NCBI GenBank assembly: GCA_024704765.1
Contig: JAKMXF010000044.1
Location: forward strand, 883,082-947,081
Direction: 5' to 3'
DNA length: 64,000 nt
Source: Oopsacas minuta
Taxonomy: Eukaryota; Animalia; Porifera
The position numbers and the translations under genes are program-made. The notes below the pieces were generated by a model. It was not told the origin of the DNA. It worked only from the letters and a program-made list of their open reading frames with translations, and searched no databases. Below, piece after piece: positions 49,137 to 60,383 of this stretch; position 1 is the stretch's first letter; every line of letters begins with the position of its first letter.

Positions 49137-51386
49137 CTATACAGCAGTGCTGCCCTCTGAGGAGGTCCTGCTATCCGAGCCCGTCCCAGCAGATAGTGAG
49201 ATTATCCCGGTAGATGTGTCCAATGCATGAAAAGGCAACATGCCTTGTGCTAGTAGCTGGCCCAAGGGACCGAGTGAAATGAGTCTTGCAGTGGGTGCGG
49301 CAGTGTTTAATAGGTGATGTTGTGATGTGTGCGGAGTGGAGGGAGAGCAGTGTCTTTGTTGCCAGTGATCGTGTGGCGGAGATATTTGTCTATCGATTGA
49401 TGGAGCAGTATGTGTACTCTTTTTAGAATTAGGATTATTATCACCTGTCCGTCTACTTCCGAATTTGAAGGAACGTTTGCTCCCACGAGTAGCAGAGGGT
49501 TGACGTAGTTTAGACATCCATACTCGTATGGTTGCATCGTCTGAAGAGGATGCTAAGATGTCAGGACGGATCGGATTCCAATGAACTGAGTTAACTGTAC
49601 GAGAATGTCCACTTAGTTTTAAGATTGGTTTCTCATTAGATTTATGCCACAAATATACAAAACCATCTTCTGAACCAGAGGCTAGGAACTCACAATTCAA
49701 CCCTCCAAAACATGAATGTATAGCGTAATATCCCTGACTAATACCTGTGTAGTGTCTGACTAGAGCTCTATCCTCTAAGTCCCAGAGATGCAGTCCCTGG
49801 TTAGAAAGGTTGAGGAGAGCTAGACCTCCGTCTGGAGATACTGAGAATGATAGTATAGGATCAGATTCCTGAATCAGGTTTGTATCGTTATGTGATTCAA
49901 AATGGTATTGTCGTATCCGCATATGAGTATCAGCTGCTAATACTAACTTAGGATCCTTGAGTACATGTAATCCTGTTACCCTCAGGCCCTCCCATTGCTC
50001 TATCACACTACCTTCTAAATCACATTGATAAAACTGTCCCTTAGTCCCCCCTGTGCAGAATATGTCAGTGTCTAACCAAGCGCATGAAGTAAGAGAATCT
50101 TCACGCGTGTTATTGACAGTACAGCGTATCTCTCCTGTATCAGAGCTGAACACCATCAATTCAGAGGACTCCTCTCTCCCACAGGATATGATGTGTTTAT
50201 CGTCAGGTGACCAGCTTAGATACCCTATACCTCCTGCCTGAGCTGTAAGGGTGTGTAGGAGTGCAGGAGAGGAGGAAGGGTAGTCTTCTGTTATAATTAT
50301 AGAGAAGTCATATATAATAATTTTACCATCCTTACAGCCAGAAGCTAGCTTACTACCATCATGTGAGAATTGTAAGAACCAAACTTCATCAGTGTGTTCT
50401 TTGAGTATGAATCTGGTTTCAGAGGGGAGGAGGTCATCTGAGCAGAGATGGTCCTGTAACAATCCCTCGTGTTCAGTTTCTCTAACAACATACATATTGT
50501 GACAAGGACATTGAGAGATCTGCCATTGTAGAGATTGTCTCAGTAACTCGTCCATTCTATCTCCCGGTAGTACTGCTTGTACTGGCAGGTAGCATTCTAA
50601 TCGCTCCACGAGTAGTTGTCTGCTATCACCCTTACTACCACTCCAATTAGCACACGTTTTAAGCTCTTCCACAGACCTACACATCATACAGGAAGACAGC
50701 TGATGTACCCGTTCTGTCTTCTCTGTGTCCTGAGGAAGCTGAGGGAGTAGAGGAGATATCTCTTCTCTCAGGCACTGCAAAGCTTCTATGTCTTGCTTCG
50801 TTTCCAGGAGTTCTAAGTATTTTTGTTCTAACAGCAAGAAGCGCATGGTGTGTACAATTTGTTGATCTTCTAACAGAGATGACAAATCAACAAGAGCCTT
50901 CTCAGCTCCAGGCCAGTCTCCACTGAGTACTTTCTGACGGAAAGTAGCAGCTAATACGTGTTCAAGACGACAACCACTCTCCCGAACTAGATTACTAACA
51001 GTCTGGTGGTATCCCATTCTACGCAGATATTGTCCAATCAAACGGACAATGTTCTCCTCCCAGGGGGTGAGGTCTTTACGAGGGAGCGGGACAGAAAACT
51101 CCTCTTTTACCTGGATATCAGGTATACTTTCGGTACTGCTAGAAATTCCATTTCCATTCATGATAGAGGCATTCGTAACAGTGTGCTCTTTGAAGTTCGC
51201 GACTGTTTGCCCAGAATTTGATTGTATTGGGAATTGGGTCGGCCTGTTTTGCAGGCCTTGTGAGTCAGTAGGTTGAGGATCCAGATTGAAGTGTCTCTGT
51301 ACGGAGGGGCGTCGTCGTTTAGGAGGCGGGGGTCCAAACCCTAAGGGACTACTGCTCGAATCACTATCTTGAGAGGCCAGTTTCAA
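49137..51386 (-). CDS. WDR26: WD repeat protein 26 (CTLH/GID complex subunit), single coding exon
   Basis: LisH/CTLH IVRLIGQYL..LVRESGCRLEH, FLLLEQKYLELLE; WD40 EHTDEVWFLQFS, ASGSEDGFVYLWH, GHSRTVNSVHWNP. First in-frame ATG is at 51161. Confidence 0.95.
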   Translation of the reverse strand: MKLASQDSDSSSSPLGFGPPPPKRRRPSVQRHFNLDPQPTDSQGLQNRPTQFPIQSNSGQTVANFKEHTVTNASIMNGNGISSSTESIPDIQVKEEFSVPLPRKDLTPWEENIVRLIGQYLRRMGYHQTVSNLVRESGCRLEHVLAATFRQKVLSGDWPGAEKALVDLSSLLEDQQIVHTMRFLLLEQKYLELLETKQDIEALQCLREEISPLLPQLPQDTEKTERVHQLSSCMMCRSVEELKTCANWSGSKGDSRQLLVERLECYLPVQAVLPGDRMDELLRQSLQWQISQCPCHNMYVVRETEHEGLLQDHLCSDDLLPSETRFILKEHTDEVWFLQFSHDGSKLASGCKDGKIIIYDFSIIITEDYPSSSPALLHTLTAQAGGIGYLSWSPDDKHIISCGREESSELMVFSSDTGEIRCTVNNTREDSLTSCAWLDTDIFCTGGTKGQFYQCDLEGSVIEQWEGLRVTGLHVLKDPKLVLAADTHMRIRQYHFESHNDTNLIQESDPILSFSVSPDGGLALLNLSNQGLHLWDLEDRALVRHYTGISQGYYAIHSCFGGLNCEFLASGSEDGFVYLWHKSNEKPILKLSGHSRTVNSVHWNPIRPDILASSSDDATIRVWMSKLRQPSATRGSKRSFKFGSRRTGDNNPNSKKSTHTAPSIDRQISPPHDHWQQRHCSPSTPHTSQHHLLNTAAPTARLISLGPLGQLLAQGMLPFHALDTSTGIISLSAGTGSDSRTSSEGSTAV

Positions 51387-53539: not shown

Positions 53540-54065
53540 TTAGACCTCTCCATAACTTCAGGAAATATAGTTTTTCGTGTTATTTATGTTACTGTCCACC
53601 TCCTTCGCCCAAAAAATATTTTCTTTGGCCAATTTATGTCTGAATTCCAAGATTTAATTGAGCGAGTATATACTAACCAACATAAGTTAATCTTAGCTAG
53701 TGATTTTAATATAAAATTTGACTTAGTTTTAGATCCAGAGAGAGAATCCGATTTAGTGATGCTCTTGAGACAATTGACTTTCAAAACACATAAAATCTCC
53801 AACTCATATTTCAGGTCACACTCTAGATCTTGTGATCACAAAGTGTTCAAATAGTGATTCTATTAAATCCCTCAATACTTTTTCAGATAGTCCTTCAGAC
53901 CATTCCTATATCATTTGTGATGTATACTATCCTCGGCCTAACTTCCAAAATACAATTTGTATAGAGAAAAGTGCACAAACAAATCTGAAAATATTATTCC
54001 TGTACTTATGAACTTACACTGGTTACCAGTCAAAGCTCGTATTGAATACAAAATCCTGAAAATTG
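53540..54065 (+). mobile_element. L2/CR1-type LINE relic, left part
   Basis: Endonuclease-like KLILASDFNI and RT C-terminal LHWLPVKARIEYKILK. Confidence 0.75.
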
Positions 54066-54084
54066 GAGTTATTTAAAAGTGAGT

Positions 54085-54119
54085 AGCGCATGCGCTGCAT
54101 TTTGAGTAGCGCATGCGCT
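54085..54119. promoter_or_regulatory. Two NRF1-consensus palindromes AGCGCATGCGCT (54085..54096, 54108..54119) at the left end
   Basis: Exact GCGCATGCGC, the established NRF1 consensus; copies start 23 bp apart, upstream of the gene at 54343. Confidence 0.8.
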
Positions 54120-54342
54120 ACATTAATATATAATTGGAATTTTGGAAAAAAGTAGGCTCTCAAATTACATCCTATTATAGTGTAATTAAATCCGCAGGAA
54201 CTGATATTAATTTTTGAGTTTTGTTACTTATTTCTACTTCCTTTATTAGCAAAATCCCTAAATATGTTTCTCAATTAACTTTATACTTTACTCAATCAGT
54301 GTTTCCTCTTGATTTCCCATTCTGTACCCTTGATTAGCCAAA

Positions 54343-56059
54343 ATGCCAAAGATCCCCAAATTGACAAAGAATAATGCTATAATGGTACTGACAGACATAT
54401 TATCTGAGTTTCGTTCAGTAACAGGTGAATATGCCGGAGCTGTATTTTCATGGCATGGAAAGCTTGGCTCTTTGGGTCCAGAAAAATTTCAAAGCTATAT
54501 CACTGGGAATAGCGCTGAAATATCAAGAACTCTACTGACTAACCAAATATCTACAAGTACGTCAGCGTCATCAAAGCCTGTTCGTGATCACGAAATCCTC
54601 AAGCTATTAGATGGAGATATATCTGGCTATAATGTACAGGGACTGCGAAGACTTGTTTCTGCGATTATAAAAGTGTCAACTGGTAAGTCAACGGTGTGAA
54701 TTTATATAATTATATGGGTCACTGATTATATATCTCTGTATTTTAGGGAAAGGTATGTTTTTTTGGAATGATCCTTCTCTCAAACCACCTTTTTGGCCCG
54801 AAAGAGTCCCTTTCGAAAACATAAAAAGCGCATGTAAGATTCATCTGCGTATGATAATAGAATCATATAAGGATTACTCTATGAAAGCGCGAGTTTCAGT
54901 CCGCCCTCAATCTCAGAAGTCTCCAAGCTCTTCTCAAGCATCGCGACATGATATCTACCGTGACCGATCTAGATCTCCTCTTGATTTCGCTAGAGATGTA
55001 ATACACCAAGAATCTGATGTAGATACTAGTGATGATTCCTTCGATGAGCTTTTTCAGCAACCCGTTATCGCTTCGAACAAACCTATTTCAGATCCTCAAA
55101 CACCTACCCCAACTTCCAGTCTGGTGACATTACTCGGAGTTAAGCCATTGGATCCTATCCAAATAATCACTCCTCCCATTAGTTTAAATGAGAAAAACTT
55201 GTCAATTTCTGAATTGTCAAGTCGTAATACTTTCCTAACAGGCACCACCATTAATGCATTCTGTGTAAGTTTATTATACATTGAAATTCAATCCGTTTTG
55301 TTAGCAAATATTCTCATACCATATATGTATTTGTAGACATTACTGAAGAAGAATTTCCCCCATTTACAGGGACTTCAGGATACTATTCTCTCCGAAGTGA
55401 GTTTCTCGGTTTAAATTTTTGAATTGTAAATCAATATTTGATATTCAATTAATTCTTAGAATCGTCAATTCGTCAAAGCTCCTCGTCCTAGTATACAACT
55501 GCATCACGATGGCGCACTTCACTGGGTTTGCTCCAGTATTGATGTTGAAGGGCATGTAACTTTATATGATTCGCTATCTACTGGGAGAATATCTGATGAA
55601 TTAGCTGTGCAATTGGCCTTCCTATATGGAAATGATGCTGATCATGAGCTGAAAGTCGCCCTTGCTCCTATTCAGCAGCAAAGAGGTGGGGCGGATTGTG
55701 GTTTATTTGCAGCGGCAGTCTGTTTGACAATAGCAACGGGAGGCGACCCAACCCAAGTATACTGGAAACAGTCAAGAATGAGATCTCACCTAACTGATTG
55801 TTTCAACAGCGAAATTTTGACACCCTTTCCTAAGATAGAAAGAATAGTATTACGATCTCGCCTGACTACAAATCTAGGGACAGATTTAAAGATAAAGTTA
55901 TGGTGTTTATGTCATCTACCCAGTTGCGCGTCAAAAAATATGATTGAATGTCCCAAATGTCTTAAATGGTTCCACAAACCATGTGTAGGACTTGAAGATA
56001 TTGACAAAGACATCGATAACTTTTATTGTCACAATTGTCGTGAGTCTCCTAACATATAA
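54343..56059 (+). CDS. NRF1-like DNA-binding domain + Ulp1/C48-type protease + PHD finger, 4 exons, 505 aa
   Basis: Exons 54343-54682, 54747-55264, 55337-55396, 55460-56059 (GT-AG, 1518 nt in frame). KVSTGKG..W..KPPFWPE; His (HWV), Asp (YDS), Gln/Cys (QQQRGGADCG); C4HC3 WCLC..CPKC.KWFHKPC..YCHNC. Confidence 0.85.
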
Positions 56060-56066
56060 ACTATTT

Positions 56067-59000
56067 TCATATATTATTATTTTGTGATAGAATATGTAGA
56101 TTCAAACATGCTAGAAAATATCTTGTAGTGAAGAATACATTATCAATACGCATGTATGCGATTTGTGTTGCTATCCTTCTTAGTGATGAAAACAACTGCT
56201 CGCAAATTTGTGAGTTTAGCTTTTTCATCTCGTCAGTCTGAATTGATCTCAAAGAATAAGAGGGATTGCACTTGTGGTTTGTAGAATGGAATCGATCAAT
56301 CAGAAATGTTGTCTTACGAAATACTTTGGGGTCCCTATATAAAAAATCACGAATTAATTTCTATTTGAAATCTCGATTATTTATCATTTATACCCAATTT
56401 GTTATGTGCACTTACCTTTTCATACATGTTTTGTGTAAGTTGCAAGCATTATCGTAGATGATCACTTTTGGCTGTTCTCTGAATATGGTCATTAACAAAT
56501 TATAAATTACAACTGTAGATTCGTGTTGTCTGAGGATTTGGAAACCATAACAAATCCTGTGCTTACAAGCGATTGCTACTATTCCGGGGGAAAACCTTTT
56601 GTGAGTTGGAAACTTTTTGAGACACGGTTCAGCTGACTCAACTTCTGGATTTTCGTATACTGGCAACCTGTACAATTATAGTAGAATGGTAAAATATAAA
56701 AAAAGTTGAATAGCATTTAGTATTTTCAGTATAAACACAATTACAAGTTTGAACTTACATGTAGTTTGTTGTGAATGCTGGGAAATAATTGTAGTAGTTT
56801 TCGCTTTGTGGAGAATATTCCACTAATTTTCTTGACGTTCTACTAAATAAACTCTCTATTTGTGTCAGGATTCTTTTCAACAGCGGGAAAACTTTGGGAT
56901 GTAAAGTGACAAACCCTGTGCATGTGATATCTTTATTAGGTTTGATAGAATTGAATAAGATATCCAATGTATACATCTTCTGATATATTGAATTAAAGGA
57001 ATCTTCACTTGCTGATTTTCCATTGGCAAGAAGAGCTATTGCTTTCCGTTCATTCGGTTCCAGCAGAGAGAATTGGAATACTCCTGATATTGGATCTGTA
57101 TGGCAAAGGAGTTTTATGACTTTCTTAACATGTATATATTCTTCACTTATAGTCACTAAATTTTCTGTCCTAATGGAACTAAATAAAATATAATCAGCCA
57201 TTTCTTTATGAATAGACTTCAATAGGTCTTTTAGCGTATTTTCTGTCAAACCTTCAGAACAGAATTTAAGGAGTTGCTTTCTAATTGCTGTGTCGGGGAT
57301 AAAAACACGATCTGAAAATGGGATCATAGGGTATTGCTGATCCTGATCGAATTTTGCATCCACTTCTGGTACTGATTTCATTGTTCCCATCGCTATGCCA
57401 TCTAAAATTATCACATCGGGATGATTTTTACACTTTGGACATATGTAGTTCGAGTCATAATCTATGTCTACTGTTCTCAGATAGGCGTTCCATGCCTGAT
57501 AAACAATGTGATAATGGAATGTATTCGTTCTACCCATTCTGATAAGCTTCCTGTTCTTGGCACTAAAGAGTAAAACGAAGAATTAGATTGTATGTATATA
57601 GGAATTTTAATTTATCAAGAATATATTTTAAACAATACATACCTCAAGTAACCGTACAAAGTATTTCTAGACATGGTCATCAACTCGCTATAATCATATA
57701 ACAAACTGTAATGAACAAAATACTTGTTGTTGATGTTTAACAGTGAACTGTTCTGACCTTCGAAGACTGCCAAGCAATTGCAAAGTCCACTGCATCTTGA
57801 ACTGTAAACTATATACTTACAATATAATTACTGAGTTACCAAGCACAGGCAAATTTAGGGAGGGGGTAAATTGGGACGAGTTGATTGCAATCGAATGAAC
57901 AATCTTATATGTAGACCAAATATTTATTGAAATTCCTTTATAATTGCAAGACTTGTTTTCAACGGCTAAATACGTAGAATAACCGATCATACTAAATTAA
58001 AATTGCGACCGAGCGAATGGTTCATTGATGATAAATATATACTTTTGTAATCTTTGAATTCATTAATATCATTTTCTAAATAGATAACTATTCCAACCTT
58101 CTCTAGTTTAAGCTTCTCCTCTTCATTGAATTTGAAACCATAGTCACAAAATTCCTTTTCAGGATACATATTTAAAGGTAAATTGATGCCATGGAAGAGC
58201 TGATAGTTGTAAATTGCTATTTGGCTTTCATCTAGATTGAATGGTATTGCTCTTGTTGATATCGTGTTATATTCAAACTTTTTCTGTGTATTTGATCCAG
58301 TATTTTCGAGAATATTATGGAGTCTAGAATGTTGTTTGCACTTTGAAGAACAAGAACAACATAACCACCTATCATTATTTAATTGGAAGTTGTGAAAAGT
58401 ATCATCTGTCAACAGAAAGATATCGTTAGGACTTGGGAAATAATATATTATGTCTTCTAGAATGTTTGCTTCACAAACTTGCAAACAATCATTTTGTGAA
58501 CAGAGTTCAAATGCTTGATAATGAGAACAAGTATCACTATAACAATTGGCGCATAGATTGCTGTTTGTTTCAATTATGATTCTCCTTTTGTTTAGTACAA
58601 CGGTTCCTTGAAATACAAAATGTTTAGTTATGGTAGTGAGAATAGTAAATGTACAGTAGACTCCGATTAATAGGGTCACTTGGGACCAGGCCATTTGACC
58701 CGATTAACCGAAATAAAGGTGTTGGGCCCTACGAACCGGAGCAGAGAGACAAACATGCAAACAGACAACAATAATAGCGATAATAACGTAAATTTACCTT
58801 GAGAGTAATCATAATCTGCAATTATAACATATTCACTATCCTCTAACTTTTGTATGTGAGACTTCAATATCAATAGTTTTACATACTGGTCAATTATAGG
58901 CATTTCTACTTGTTTCATTTCTGGTTCTGAGAAGCAATCAGGTTGACACTGATCTATGCGAAATATTATATTGAATCAACAAGCAACTAAAGTTTGCTTG

Positions 59001-59264
59001 AAAGCATAAGGAATTAAGAATATAATTATCACCTGTTTTTGACCATGTTGGTACATCTGATTCTATCAATTTAAATGATTCCCCTTCTGATAGGCATACT
59101 TTGTCGATGTCTAATGTGATGAAGCTGATATCTTCTTTCTCCGAGATTTTTCGTTTTTTTGGGTATATATTATCAGATCCAGTTTGTGAAGTTACTTTTT
59201 CAGCCATTTCCAAAATGAAATTATCTAATGAATGGTATAAATTTATATATCTACTTCTATACAT
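56067..59264 (-). CDS. KDZ-family (HMGXB3/Zisupton-related) transposase, 7 exons, ~813 aa
   Basis: Exons 59264-59033, 58953-58798, 58606-58043, 57808-57643, 57562-56759, 56667-56416, 56334-56067 (GT-AG, 2442 nt, no stops). SWIM-like CxxC-C-H and Cys clusters; IILDG, PG..ACKH..YG..ES, IIYDNAC, IDRFH..NH, NSQICEQ. Confidence 0.85.
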
Positions 59265-59408
59265 TATAAATGCACCAGCATTCCAATGACCACTTGTCGT
59301 AATGTGGTTTCGAAACTTATCTAATCACATTCAATTCAGCAGTTTGGGTAACTATGGTTGAAATGATAACGCGTATCTATAAATATGACATACCAATAAT
59401 CCTAATGC

Positions 59409-59420
59409 AGCGCATGCGCT
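59409..59420. promoter_or_regulatory. NRF1-consensus palindrome AGCGCATGCGCT in the right TIR
   Basis: Exact motif, about 145 bp upstream of the transposase ATG on the minus strand. Confidence 0.8.
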
Positions 59421-59439
59421 ACTCATTTTTAAATATATG

Positions 59440-59800
59440 GAAAATTGTTTACAAAATTTATCTTAAGAGTTTGATATCTTTTTCAGAATCTTACTTATGA
59501 CCATAGATCACTGCTTCGAACCTACTTCGACAACCCAGGTCTATAACAAAAAATTATGGTGACCGTGCACTTTCATATGCTGCACCAAAACTATGGAATT
59601 CACTCTCTGATTAAATATGAAAATCTGCTTCACTGGAAATATTTAAAAAATAAATCAAAAAATATTCTTATTTAAACTTCATTACCTGTAAATATTGTTT
59701 TATGAGTTAAGTACTTCTGTATTTGATTGCATATTATGTATATTTATCCGTAATTTGACCCGTAAACGCTTTGAGACTCTGCGGAAAGCGTACAAATACT
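59440..59800 (+). mobile_element. L2/CR1-type LINE relic, right part
   Basis: IVYK..YLKSLI and YGDRA.SYAAPKLWNSL, followed by a (TAT)n tail. Confidence 0.75.

Positions 59801-59801
<1 letters not shown>

Positions 59802-59843
<42 letters not shown>
59802..59843. repeat. (TAT)14 microsatellite, probably the LINE 3' tail
   Basis: Read directly from the sequence. Confidence 0.9.
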
Positions 59844-59846
<3 letters not shown>

Positions 59847-60383
59847 ACGTAACTCCTGTTATAAAGAAGTGATTCTTAACCTTCCTTATAGCTTCAAAGT
59901 AGTTGATTTTACAACAAAATACAGCTATAAAACGAAATGAAAGTGAGGTCCCTAGCACTTAGTTTAATGAAGCTTTATTGTATATGTATATGGCATAAAA
60001 GGATAGGATACAATTTTGATTTTGCTGCCCGGAGAAAGCCTTAAAATGGTGAATGCGGCCCTCAACCCAATAAGTTTGCCGACCCCTACCCTAGATAGTA
60101 AATACCTAATTTATGTTATATGCGAGTTCTCTGAATTGAAATTTGCTTATAATGAATAGTACTTAGCATATAATAAAACCCGTATACACAGGGGTCCCTG
60201 GTGAGCATGCTCTCAGTACTTTGCGATATCTCAGAATTTGTGTGTTCGATTGAATTTCCTATGGAAATATTCGCGACGAGTTGACCTAAAATACAGACGA
60301 GTCGGGATTTGCATAGGTACGAGTTTACTGTTGCCCTTGTCTTGCTATCTGGTCAGATTATATATTGGCTATTAGGTATTTTG

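Follow-up and report, generated by a model that had tools for sequence, protein, structure and literature searches.

In a 64-kb stretch of the genome of the glass sponge Oopsacas minuta (hereafter, the window), we found a 5374-bp element at positions 54066-59439 (contig C44) that we interpret as a structurally intact, candidate autonomous copy of a KDZ (Kyakuja-Dileera-Zisupton) transposon; as a whole, including the mechanism proposed below, we consider this account probable. The element carries two convergent genes, one for a predicted transposase and the other for an accessory protein that combines an NRF1-type DNA-binding region with a predicted C48/Ulp1-type protease and a PHD finger, and the optimal binding site of NRF1 is found in both element ends. 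Judged from these sequences, the protein that binds the ends is probably supplied by the element itself. Transposons of the KDZ/Zisupton kind are known, and movement of some has been observed in fungi. We know of no description of how KDZ/Zisupton elements recognise their ends or of what their protease-bearing parts do. An earlier reading of the window from the letters alone (the sequence-only reading) had proposed an intact two-gene element at 54058-59447, and this proposal was borne out, with both genes splicing at GT-AG introns into stop-free frames.

The boundaries of the element are defined by an 8/8 match of GAAAATTG immediately outside both ends (54066 and 59439), as expected from the 8-bp repeats that had been described as lying symmetrically around the terminal repeats. 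By our own arithmetic, using the local base composition, the chance of an exact 8/8 match at fixed positions is about 3 in 100,000. The terminal inverted repeats comprise 36-39 bp, with 39 nt of 54070-54108 matching 59397-59435 at 90%, and the outer 4 bp differ between the ends (GAGT and CATA, both read inward). Removal of the element together with one repeat restores the insertion site ...LHWLPVKARIEYKILKIVYK... and gives ...ATTGAATACAAAATCCTGAAAATTGTTTACAAA, i.e. IEYKILKIVYK, directly after LHWLPVKAR. In two paralogues of the host repeat (C352:165048-165369 and C314:41410-41738), both flanks occur on one strand at a spacing of 33 bp versus 13 bp expected, which indicates that the flanks are contiguous in the host repeat family. 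The earlier claim of a reconstructable empty site thus holds for the restored reading frame and the contiguous flanks, but a search of the assembly (61.5 Mb) with a 32-nt pattern and up to 3 mismatches revealed no paralogous empty site. The element is clearly an insertion into the host repeat, and the 20-bp length difference beside the site lacks an explanation. The host repeat, previously addressed as a LINE (long interspersed nuclear element), is indeed LINE-derived, but at this place it is only a short fragment (window 53636-54065 and 59448-59650). In this fragment, the end of the endonuclease-like region (DFN..., HTLDLVITK) is joined almost directly to the C-terminal LHWLPV...RIEYK, which identifies the host repeat as an internally deleted LINE derivative.

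The transposase gene spans 59207 to 56067 on the minus strand, and its stop codon is 7 bp apart from that of the accessory gene. Splice sites and phases were derived by arithmetic; the introns of both genes are all GT-AG with consistent phases. Domain and database searches were performed with single exons of the window or with annotated proteins of sister copies. Two consecutive window exons match the KDZ family (Pfam PF18758) in a collinear manner, exon 56416-56667 at profile positions 76-133 (E-value (E) 1.7e-3, 18.5 bits) and exon 56067-56334 at positions 146-202 (E 3.6e-4, 20.7 bits), and the spliced sister-copy protein P0020 reaches 39 bits (E 9e-10; cut-off 26.6). The CxC4 family (PF18717) was matched with 17.8 bits (E 0.003) by the window exon and with 21.6 bits (E 2e-4) by the sister protein P0018, the cut-off being 26.9 for both. 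At the level of such profile matches, these results show that the element belongs to the KDZ superfamily and that its predicted transposase has a KDZ domain and a putative CxC4 cluster. The KDZ part of the earlier assignment as KDZ/Zisupton-like is thereby supported, but the combination of CxC4 and KDZ is the sole basis for a placement inside the Zisupton clade, which we regard as suggested. No Pfam family scored above its cut-off on the Cys/His-rich exon 58043-58606, where the best match was at chance level (Ribonuclease, E 0.005).

Two models of the transposase gene were compared. Model A has 8 exons and 813 codons and passes through a 64-nt exon (57903-57840), and model B has 7 exons and 794 codons and splices from 58043 to 57808. 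The 64-nt exon is in frame, but it is less likely to be real: it needs a 38-nt intron and is used neither by the annotated sister proteins nor by family 2, a sister element described below. Model B, which agrees with family 2 (VYTSTCEGSC) and with P0018, is favoured on the basis of these alignments, model A being less likely. Junctions 1/2, 5/6, 6/7 and 7/8 recur in the annotated sister proteins P0018, P0020 and P0009.

The accessory gene lies on the plus strand and consists of 4 exons with 505 codons and GT-AG introns of 63-72 nt. Each of the three junctions is found again in annotated sister proteins, most fully in P0171 (485 aa, from the C332 copy), and the junction of exon 1 is confirmed by P0171, P0173 and P0007; exon 1 is 41% identical to the relative P0022 (E 1e-24). 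The Peptidase_C48 family (PF02902; cut-off 20.7) was matched with 19.4 bits (E 0.001) by exon 4 alone and with 18.6 bits by P0171, the motifs HW, YDS, QQQ and DCG are readable in exon 4, and relatives found with the accessory C48 region score 23-49 bits for this family. The PHD finger (PF00628) was detected in exon 4 (E 6e-5) and, with 24.5 bits at a cut-off of 24, on the open reading frame 55607-56059; it is closest to the fingers of PHF2, PHF8 and BPTF (E 9.4e-12 for that of PHF2). A scan against NCBIfam gave no matches. In line with the sequence-only reading, the predicted C48 domain is encoded by a separate gene on the opposite strand to the transposase and is not part of the transposase polypeptide. 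Three families, 32-41% identical, retain the architecture of three domains (P0171, P0172 and P0174). Among 1.84 billion representative proteins, the N-terminal domain has significant matches in about 7 (3 annotated O. minuta proteins, 3 from ENA contigs and 1 further), and the C48 part has about 230 relatives, including SWIM plus C48 and C48 plus PHD proteins. P0171 is named 'Calcium-responsive transcription factor' at NCBI, and its sister proteins bear the automatic UniProt name 'Nuclear respiratory factor 1 NLS/DNA-binding dimerisation domain-containing protein'; genes of a transposon are thus counted among the transcription factors of O. minuta.

By sequence comparison, the N-terminal 150 residues of the accessory protein are NRF1-type, a domain that the earlier account of the second gene had missed together with the NRF1 palindromes in the terminal repeats, although it had correctly recognised the Ulp1-type protease. 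For the start of exon 2, NRF1 was the only match in the PDB (E up to 10) and the only Pfam family (E up to 1). Residues 80-126 of P0173 (C10 copy), which are letter-identical to the tail of window exon 1, the Gly of the split codon and the head of exon 2, score 25.4 bits against Nrf1_DNA-bind (PF10491; cut-off 23.5). A profile built from three families matched NRF1 chains in the PDB with E 1.3e-5 (8k3d) and 4.9e-5, the next match being at 0.076. The AlphaFold model of P0022 is confident only over residues 75-150 (per-residue confidence, pLDDT, of 80-91), and the top three PDB matches of this model were NRF1 structures, with a TM-score of 0.59 and a root-mean-square deviation of 2.8 Å for 8k3d. 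In NRF1, the bases are contacted by R206, N242 and R244 (PMC10810270); according to the alignments, the corresponding residues of the accessory protein are R, N and K, and family 2 has Q at the position of N242.

With regard to dimerisation, modelling of P0171 residues 1-160 as a homodimer gave a score of 0.58 versus 0.00 for the best control, with an interface formed by residues 7-65, a contact agreement of at least 59% between runs and a pLDDT of at least 64. Among proteins solved as pairs, 21 of 30 attained the applied mark, compared to none of 23 solved as single chains; the pass of P0171 may nevertheless come from the predictor's memory of the solved NRF1 dimer. The host has an NRF1 gene of its own at C303, which scores 180.7 bits compared to 14-25 bits for the element protein (13-14 bits for single window exons), and the accessory domain is therefore not a recent copy of the host gene. 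A limited literature search yielded no paper linking NRF1-type domains with transposons.

The optimal site of NRF1 is the palindrome GCGCATGCGC (PMC10810270). In the 64-kb window, this palindrome occurs three times, with 0.01 occurrences expected by chance, and all three are inside the terminal repeats, where it occupies positions 21-30 from each element end. It forms the core of a 22-23-bp unit, of which the three youngest copies of the element carry 2+1, 1+2 and 2+3. In a relative of the element from an ENA contig, GCGCATGCGC is found twice in 16 kb, once per terminal repeat, and both ends of family 2 bear arrays of a 22-bp unit that includes TGCGCA (5.7 and 21.7 copies). Since NRF1 sites are classical promoter elements (PMC10810270) and each site lies upstream of the start codon of the adjacent gene (some 225-260 bp in the case of the accessory gene and some 190 bp in that of the transposase), the units might mainly be promoter elements through which the true NRF1 of the host drives the two inward-facing genes, with the element protein acting as a regulator or competitor rather than as a recruiter of the transposase. 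We regard this as unlikely, given that the units are placed inside the terminal inverted repeats at equal distance from both ends, that subterminal arrays such as those of family 2 are the usual pattern for sites of a transposase or its partner, and that the element keeps its own NRF1-type domain under purifying selection. The promoter and the end-recognition readings do not exclude each other.

A search of the assembly with parts of the element yielded at least 12 left ends at 93-99% identity, 35 matches to the terminal repeat versus none for the reversed control, and 31 matches to the transposase core. The whole core is present in nine copies, or ten including the internally deleted C57 copy, and among these the copy in the window is the only one in which all twelve exons are free of frameshifts and stops; the other copies examined are disrupted by frameshifts, deletions or nested insertions. 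Its nearest copies are 99.1% (C44b, which carries a nested element) and 98.4% (C332) identical. The postulated young lineage and recent insertion agree with these close relatives, but there is no identical copy and 'recent' has to be taken in a relative sense. Duplications of 8/8 at the same boundaries are shared by this copy, C357 (CTTAATAC) and the ENA relative (TTTCGCCG). The latter (L043 7368-13137; ERZ25071281, a 1.5-Mb contig of a different organism) is 78-90% identical in parts, its coding parts being up to 90% identical while its flanks match O. minuta only at the level of repeats, which makes it worth a look for horizontal transfer. Family 2 is a two-gene sister element of about 6.45 kb (L033 291-6740; G000:C44:528290-534739) that lies within the 99%-identical C44b copy at position 94-100 and is about 69% identical in its coding parts. 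It has unequal ends (CATA and GAGG), the 22-bp unit AAGTACTGTGCGCATGTCCATT and a duplication of 7 bp (ATTTGAG) plus one extra C next to the GAGG end.

Compared to the majority state of seven older copies, the copy in the window shows 25 synonymous and 17 non-synonymous differences, corresponding to a synonymous divergence (pS) of 0.031, a non-synonymous divergence (pN) of 0.0056 and a ratio of non-synonymous to synonymous rates (dN/dS) of about 0.18. For the accessory gene alone, the counts are 15 and 5. As far as substitution patterns can tell, both genes are thereby shown to have been under purifying selection while the family spread. The counts of the accessory gene also bear on the question of whether it is a mere passenger, i.e. 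a captured fragment of a host gene without a role in transposition. There are precedents for additional cargo, as genes of unknown function (bioRxiv 10.1101/2024.08.15.608186) and TET/JBP genes (PMC12730594) have been found in fungal KDZ elements, but such an origin is very improbable here: the bit scores given above speak against a recent capture of host NRF1, the three-domain architecture is retained across the three families and in another organism, synonymous differences prevail over non-synonymous ones, and the type of DNA-binding domain matches the motif in the element's own ends.

It is further conceivable that the copy is intact while the family is extinct or silenced, in which case the open frames would reflect youth and not current activity. 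The lack of an identical copy, the damage in all other examined copies and the small size of the younger subfamily, which numbers just three copies in the assembly, would fit such a situation. Twelve open exons, stop-free over about 3.9 kb of coding sequence, the perfect 8/8 duplication, the differing counts of 23-bp end units in the three youngest copies and the low dN/dS on the lineage point in the other direction, and we consider extinction or silencing rather unlikely, albeit the most serious of the alternatives.

The sequence-only reading had noted the mismatch of the outer 4 bp of the ends as unusual. The mismatch is real, but it is not damage: it represents an asymmetry that is conserved across copies. 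In every family-1 copy with intact termini, a CATA end is paired with a GAGG or GAGT end, and the same CATA/GAGK inequality is found in the 69%-identical sister family and in the ENA relative from another organism. The exception to the CATA end is the C332 copy, which has ACTG at its right end (L027 6110-6135) and for which no target duplication was found; this suggests a rearrangement or a deletion beginning at that end. The orientation of the ends relative to the genes is variable: the GAGK end is beside the accessory gene in this copy, C332, C44b and family 2, and the CATA end is beside it in the older family-1 copies and the ENA relative. Because markers internal to the repeats (G/A at position 14 and A/G at position 31) move together with the outer 4 bp, an inversion of the interior through recombination between the inverted repeats is the best explanation for the swap, and we infer that this has happened more than once. 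At two further loci (G000:C66:529975-530016 and G000:C31:8373-8414), the palindromic core is shared by a forward and a reverse match to the GAGK-type end, which implies perfect palindromes of 42 bp made of two copies of the same end type; these could be foldback products, repair products or minimal elements. Any mechanism proposed for the KDZ superfamily must account for ends that are unequal in a conserved manner and that have repeatedly changed places relative to the genes.

Based on these observations, we propose the following scheme. The transposase would cut and paste the element with a staggered target cut of 7-8 bp. A dimer of the accessory protein would bind the GCGCATGCGC units in the terminal repeats and thereby mark or pair both ends for the transposase, like the Myb-like partner in PIF/Harbinger. 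The protease and the histone-reading finger would act on the local chromatin, and the two ends (CATA end and GAGK end) would be functionally unequal.

Several points weigh against this scheme or against the underlying interpretation of the element. Taken singly, the window exons do not reach the Pfam cut-offs of Nrf1_DNA-bind, C48 and CxC4, which is to be expected of partial domains, and the third of the base-contacting residues is Lys and not Arg in the alignments. The SWIM finger expected for a Zisupton element failed to appear: there was no match on any transposase exon (E up to 1) or in the sister proteins (E up to 0.01). The element proved to be multi-copy. The anticipated duplication length of 8 bp was found in three copies including the ENA relative, and five delimited copies fit only a 7-bp register (7/7, 7/7, 6/7, 5/7 and 5/7). 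A model in which the 7- and 8-bp cases are reconciled as a 7-bp duplication plus an extra C was rejected, as the 8/8 duplication of the ENA relative starts with T. Many frameshifts of the sister copies consist of a 1-bp change within a short run of one base and could be errors of the assembly, so that calling this copy the only intact one may overstate its status. The nearest copies differ by about 1%, and activity may thus have stopped. Finally, at their distance of about 190-260 bp upstream of the start codons, the NRF1 sites could equally be promoter elements for host NRF1.

As a broader and more tentative idea, which we hold to be possible but short of likely, NRF1-type domains may be end-recognition modules of a KDZ lineage, in which the dimer recruits the transposase and the protease and PHD finger open or choose chromatin. 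If true, animal NRF1 and the transposon protein would possibly share an ancestry in mobile elements. Compared to the literature, the new feature of the system is a KDZ element with its protease in a separate gene, beside an NRF1-type domain that matches the element ends. The presence of a recognisable DNA-binding domain and of its well-measured site in both ends makes a helper role directly testable, and a copy in which every frame is open is a natural source of both coding sequences and of the ends for assays.

Table 1 Features of the KDZ element in the window, in order of position.
Feature	Position	Strand	Remarks
Left target site duplication GAAAATTG	54058-54065		Identical to 59440-59447
Left terminal inverted repeat, 'A-type' end GAGT TATTTAAAAGT GAGTAGCGCATGCGCT...	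54066-54108	+	39 nt at 90%; 'A-type' end also in sister copies, family 2 and the ENA relative
Two tandem 23-bp units, each with GCGCATGCGC (54086-54095, 54109-54118)	54080-54124	+	Direct repeat
Accessory exon 1: NRF1-type dimerisation region and start of DNA-binding domain	54343-54682	+	Includes the Arg matching NRF1 R206
Accessory exon 2: NRF1-type DNA-binding core (FWNDPSLKPPFWPERVPFENIKS), low-complexity linker, start of C48	54747-55264	+	
Accessory exon 3: N-terminal part of C48	55337-55396	+	Gene model; junctions as in P0171, P0001 and P0007
Accessory exon 4: catalytic part of C48/Ulp1, PHD finger (~55904-56038), stop codon	55460-56059	+	
Last transposase exon: C-terminal KDZ part (DRFHSTNHKC), stop codon	56067-56334	-	Pfam KDZ; junction in P0020
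Transposase exon: central KDZ part (IIYDNACNLH)	56416-56667	-	Pfam KDZ
Transposase exon, 267 codons	56759-57562	-	Gene model; junctions in P0018, P0020 and P0009; relatives found
Transposase exon with CxC4-type cysteine cluster	57643-57808	-	Starts at 57801 (model A) or 57808 (model B)
Optional 64-nt exon, model A only, doubtful	57840-57903	-	Phase arithmetic
Transposase exon, 187 codons, Cys/His-rich	58043-58606	-	Gene model
Transposase exon 2	58798-58953	-	Gene model; exon 1/2 junction as in P0018
Transposase exon 1, start codon 233 bp from right end	59033-59207	-	Gene model
Right terminal inverted repeat, 'B-type' end CATA TATTTAAAAAT GAGTAGCGCATGCGCT...	59397-59439	-	
Right-end NRF1 palindrome	59410-59419		Inside right terminal repeat
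Right target site duplication GAAAATTG	59440-59447		Abuts element end at 59439

Two further features were observed in the vicinity of the element. A three-base repeat extends over window 59760-59850, just downstream of the host repeat, and this long run is read as poly-Ile or poly-Asn in the open reading frames 59695-59847 and 59734-59958. At a distance of 2.7 kb from the insertion, an intronless frame of 749 aa on the minus strand (window 49137-51386) has a LisH, CTLH and WD40 composition similar to WDR26 and presumably represents a host gene.

For comparison with other members of the superfamily, the platyfish Zisupton described by Bohne and colleagues in 2012 is reportedly associated with a Ulp1/SUMO-type protease. 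Among published KDZ elements, target duplications measure 8 bp in Zisupton and Dileera and 7 bp in Kyakuja (PMC12730594). In Cryptococcus, the combination of CxC4, KDZ and SWIM has been called the canonical Zisupton layout, and KDZx1 of Cryptococcus deneoformans, an element of 6.4 kb with two reading frames and 8-bp duplications, was seen to move (bioRxiv 10.1101/2024.08.15.608186). The sponge element resembles these Zisupton elements (platyfish, KDZx1) in the putative CxC4-type cluster before the KDZ domain, the multi-exon genes and the 8-bp duplication, shares with the platyfish element the association with a Ulp1-type protease, which is a predicted one here, and shares with KDZx1 the presence of two reading frames. 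It differs from Zisupton in that no SWIM finger was detected, the outer 4 bp of the ends are unequal and some copies follow a 7-bp register, and in that the protease has a convergent gene of its own, in which it is joined to an NRF1-type region and a PHD finger. It is also short (5.4 kb), with a transposase of about 800 aa compared to up to 1400 aa (PMC9297572). The Kyakuja elements of Agaricomycotina are alike in belonging to the KDZ superfamily and in having 7-bp duplications and a 5'-CA terminus, to be compared with the CATA end of the sponge element, but they lack terminal inverted repeats and carry TET/JBP dioxygenase genes (PMC12730594), whereas the sponge element has repeats of 36-39 bp and no TET/JBP gene.

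With NRF1, EWG and P3A2 (PMC10810270; PDB 8k4l and 8k3d), the accessory protein shares the order of a dimerisation region followed by a DNA-binding core with WWPE...N.R. In contrast to these proteins, it is very divergent, has Lys at the position of R244, continues into a C48 protease and a PHD finger and is encoded inside a multi-copy transposon.

In PIF/Harbinger transposons, the transposase acts together with a DNA-binding partner of the Myb/SANT type, and target duplications are 3 bp long. Their transposase belongs to an unrelated superfamily, the partner is Myb/SANT and not NRF1-type and has neither a protease nor a PHD finger, and the duplications differ in length from those of the sponge element. 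In outline, these two-gene transposons, which are mentioned in PMC12730594, are nevertheless alike: in both systems, a second protein has a DNA-binding domain of the transcription-factor type, with presumed binding sites in the element's ends.

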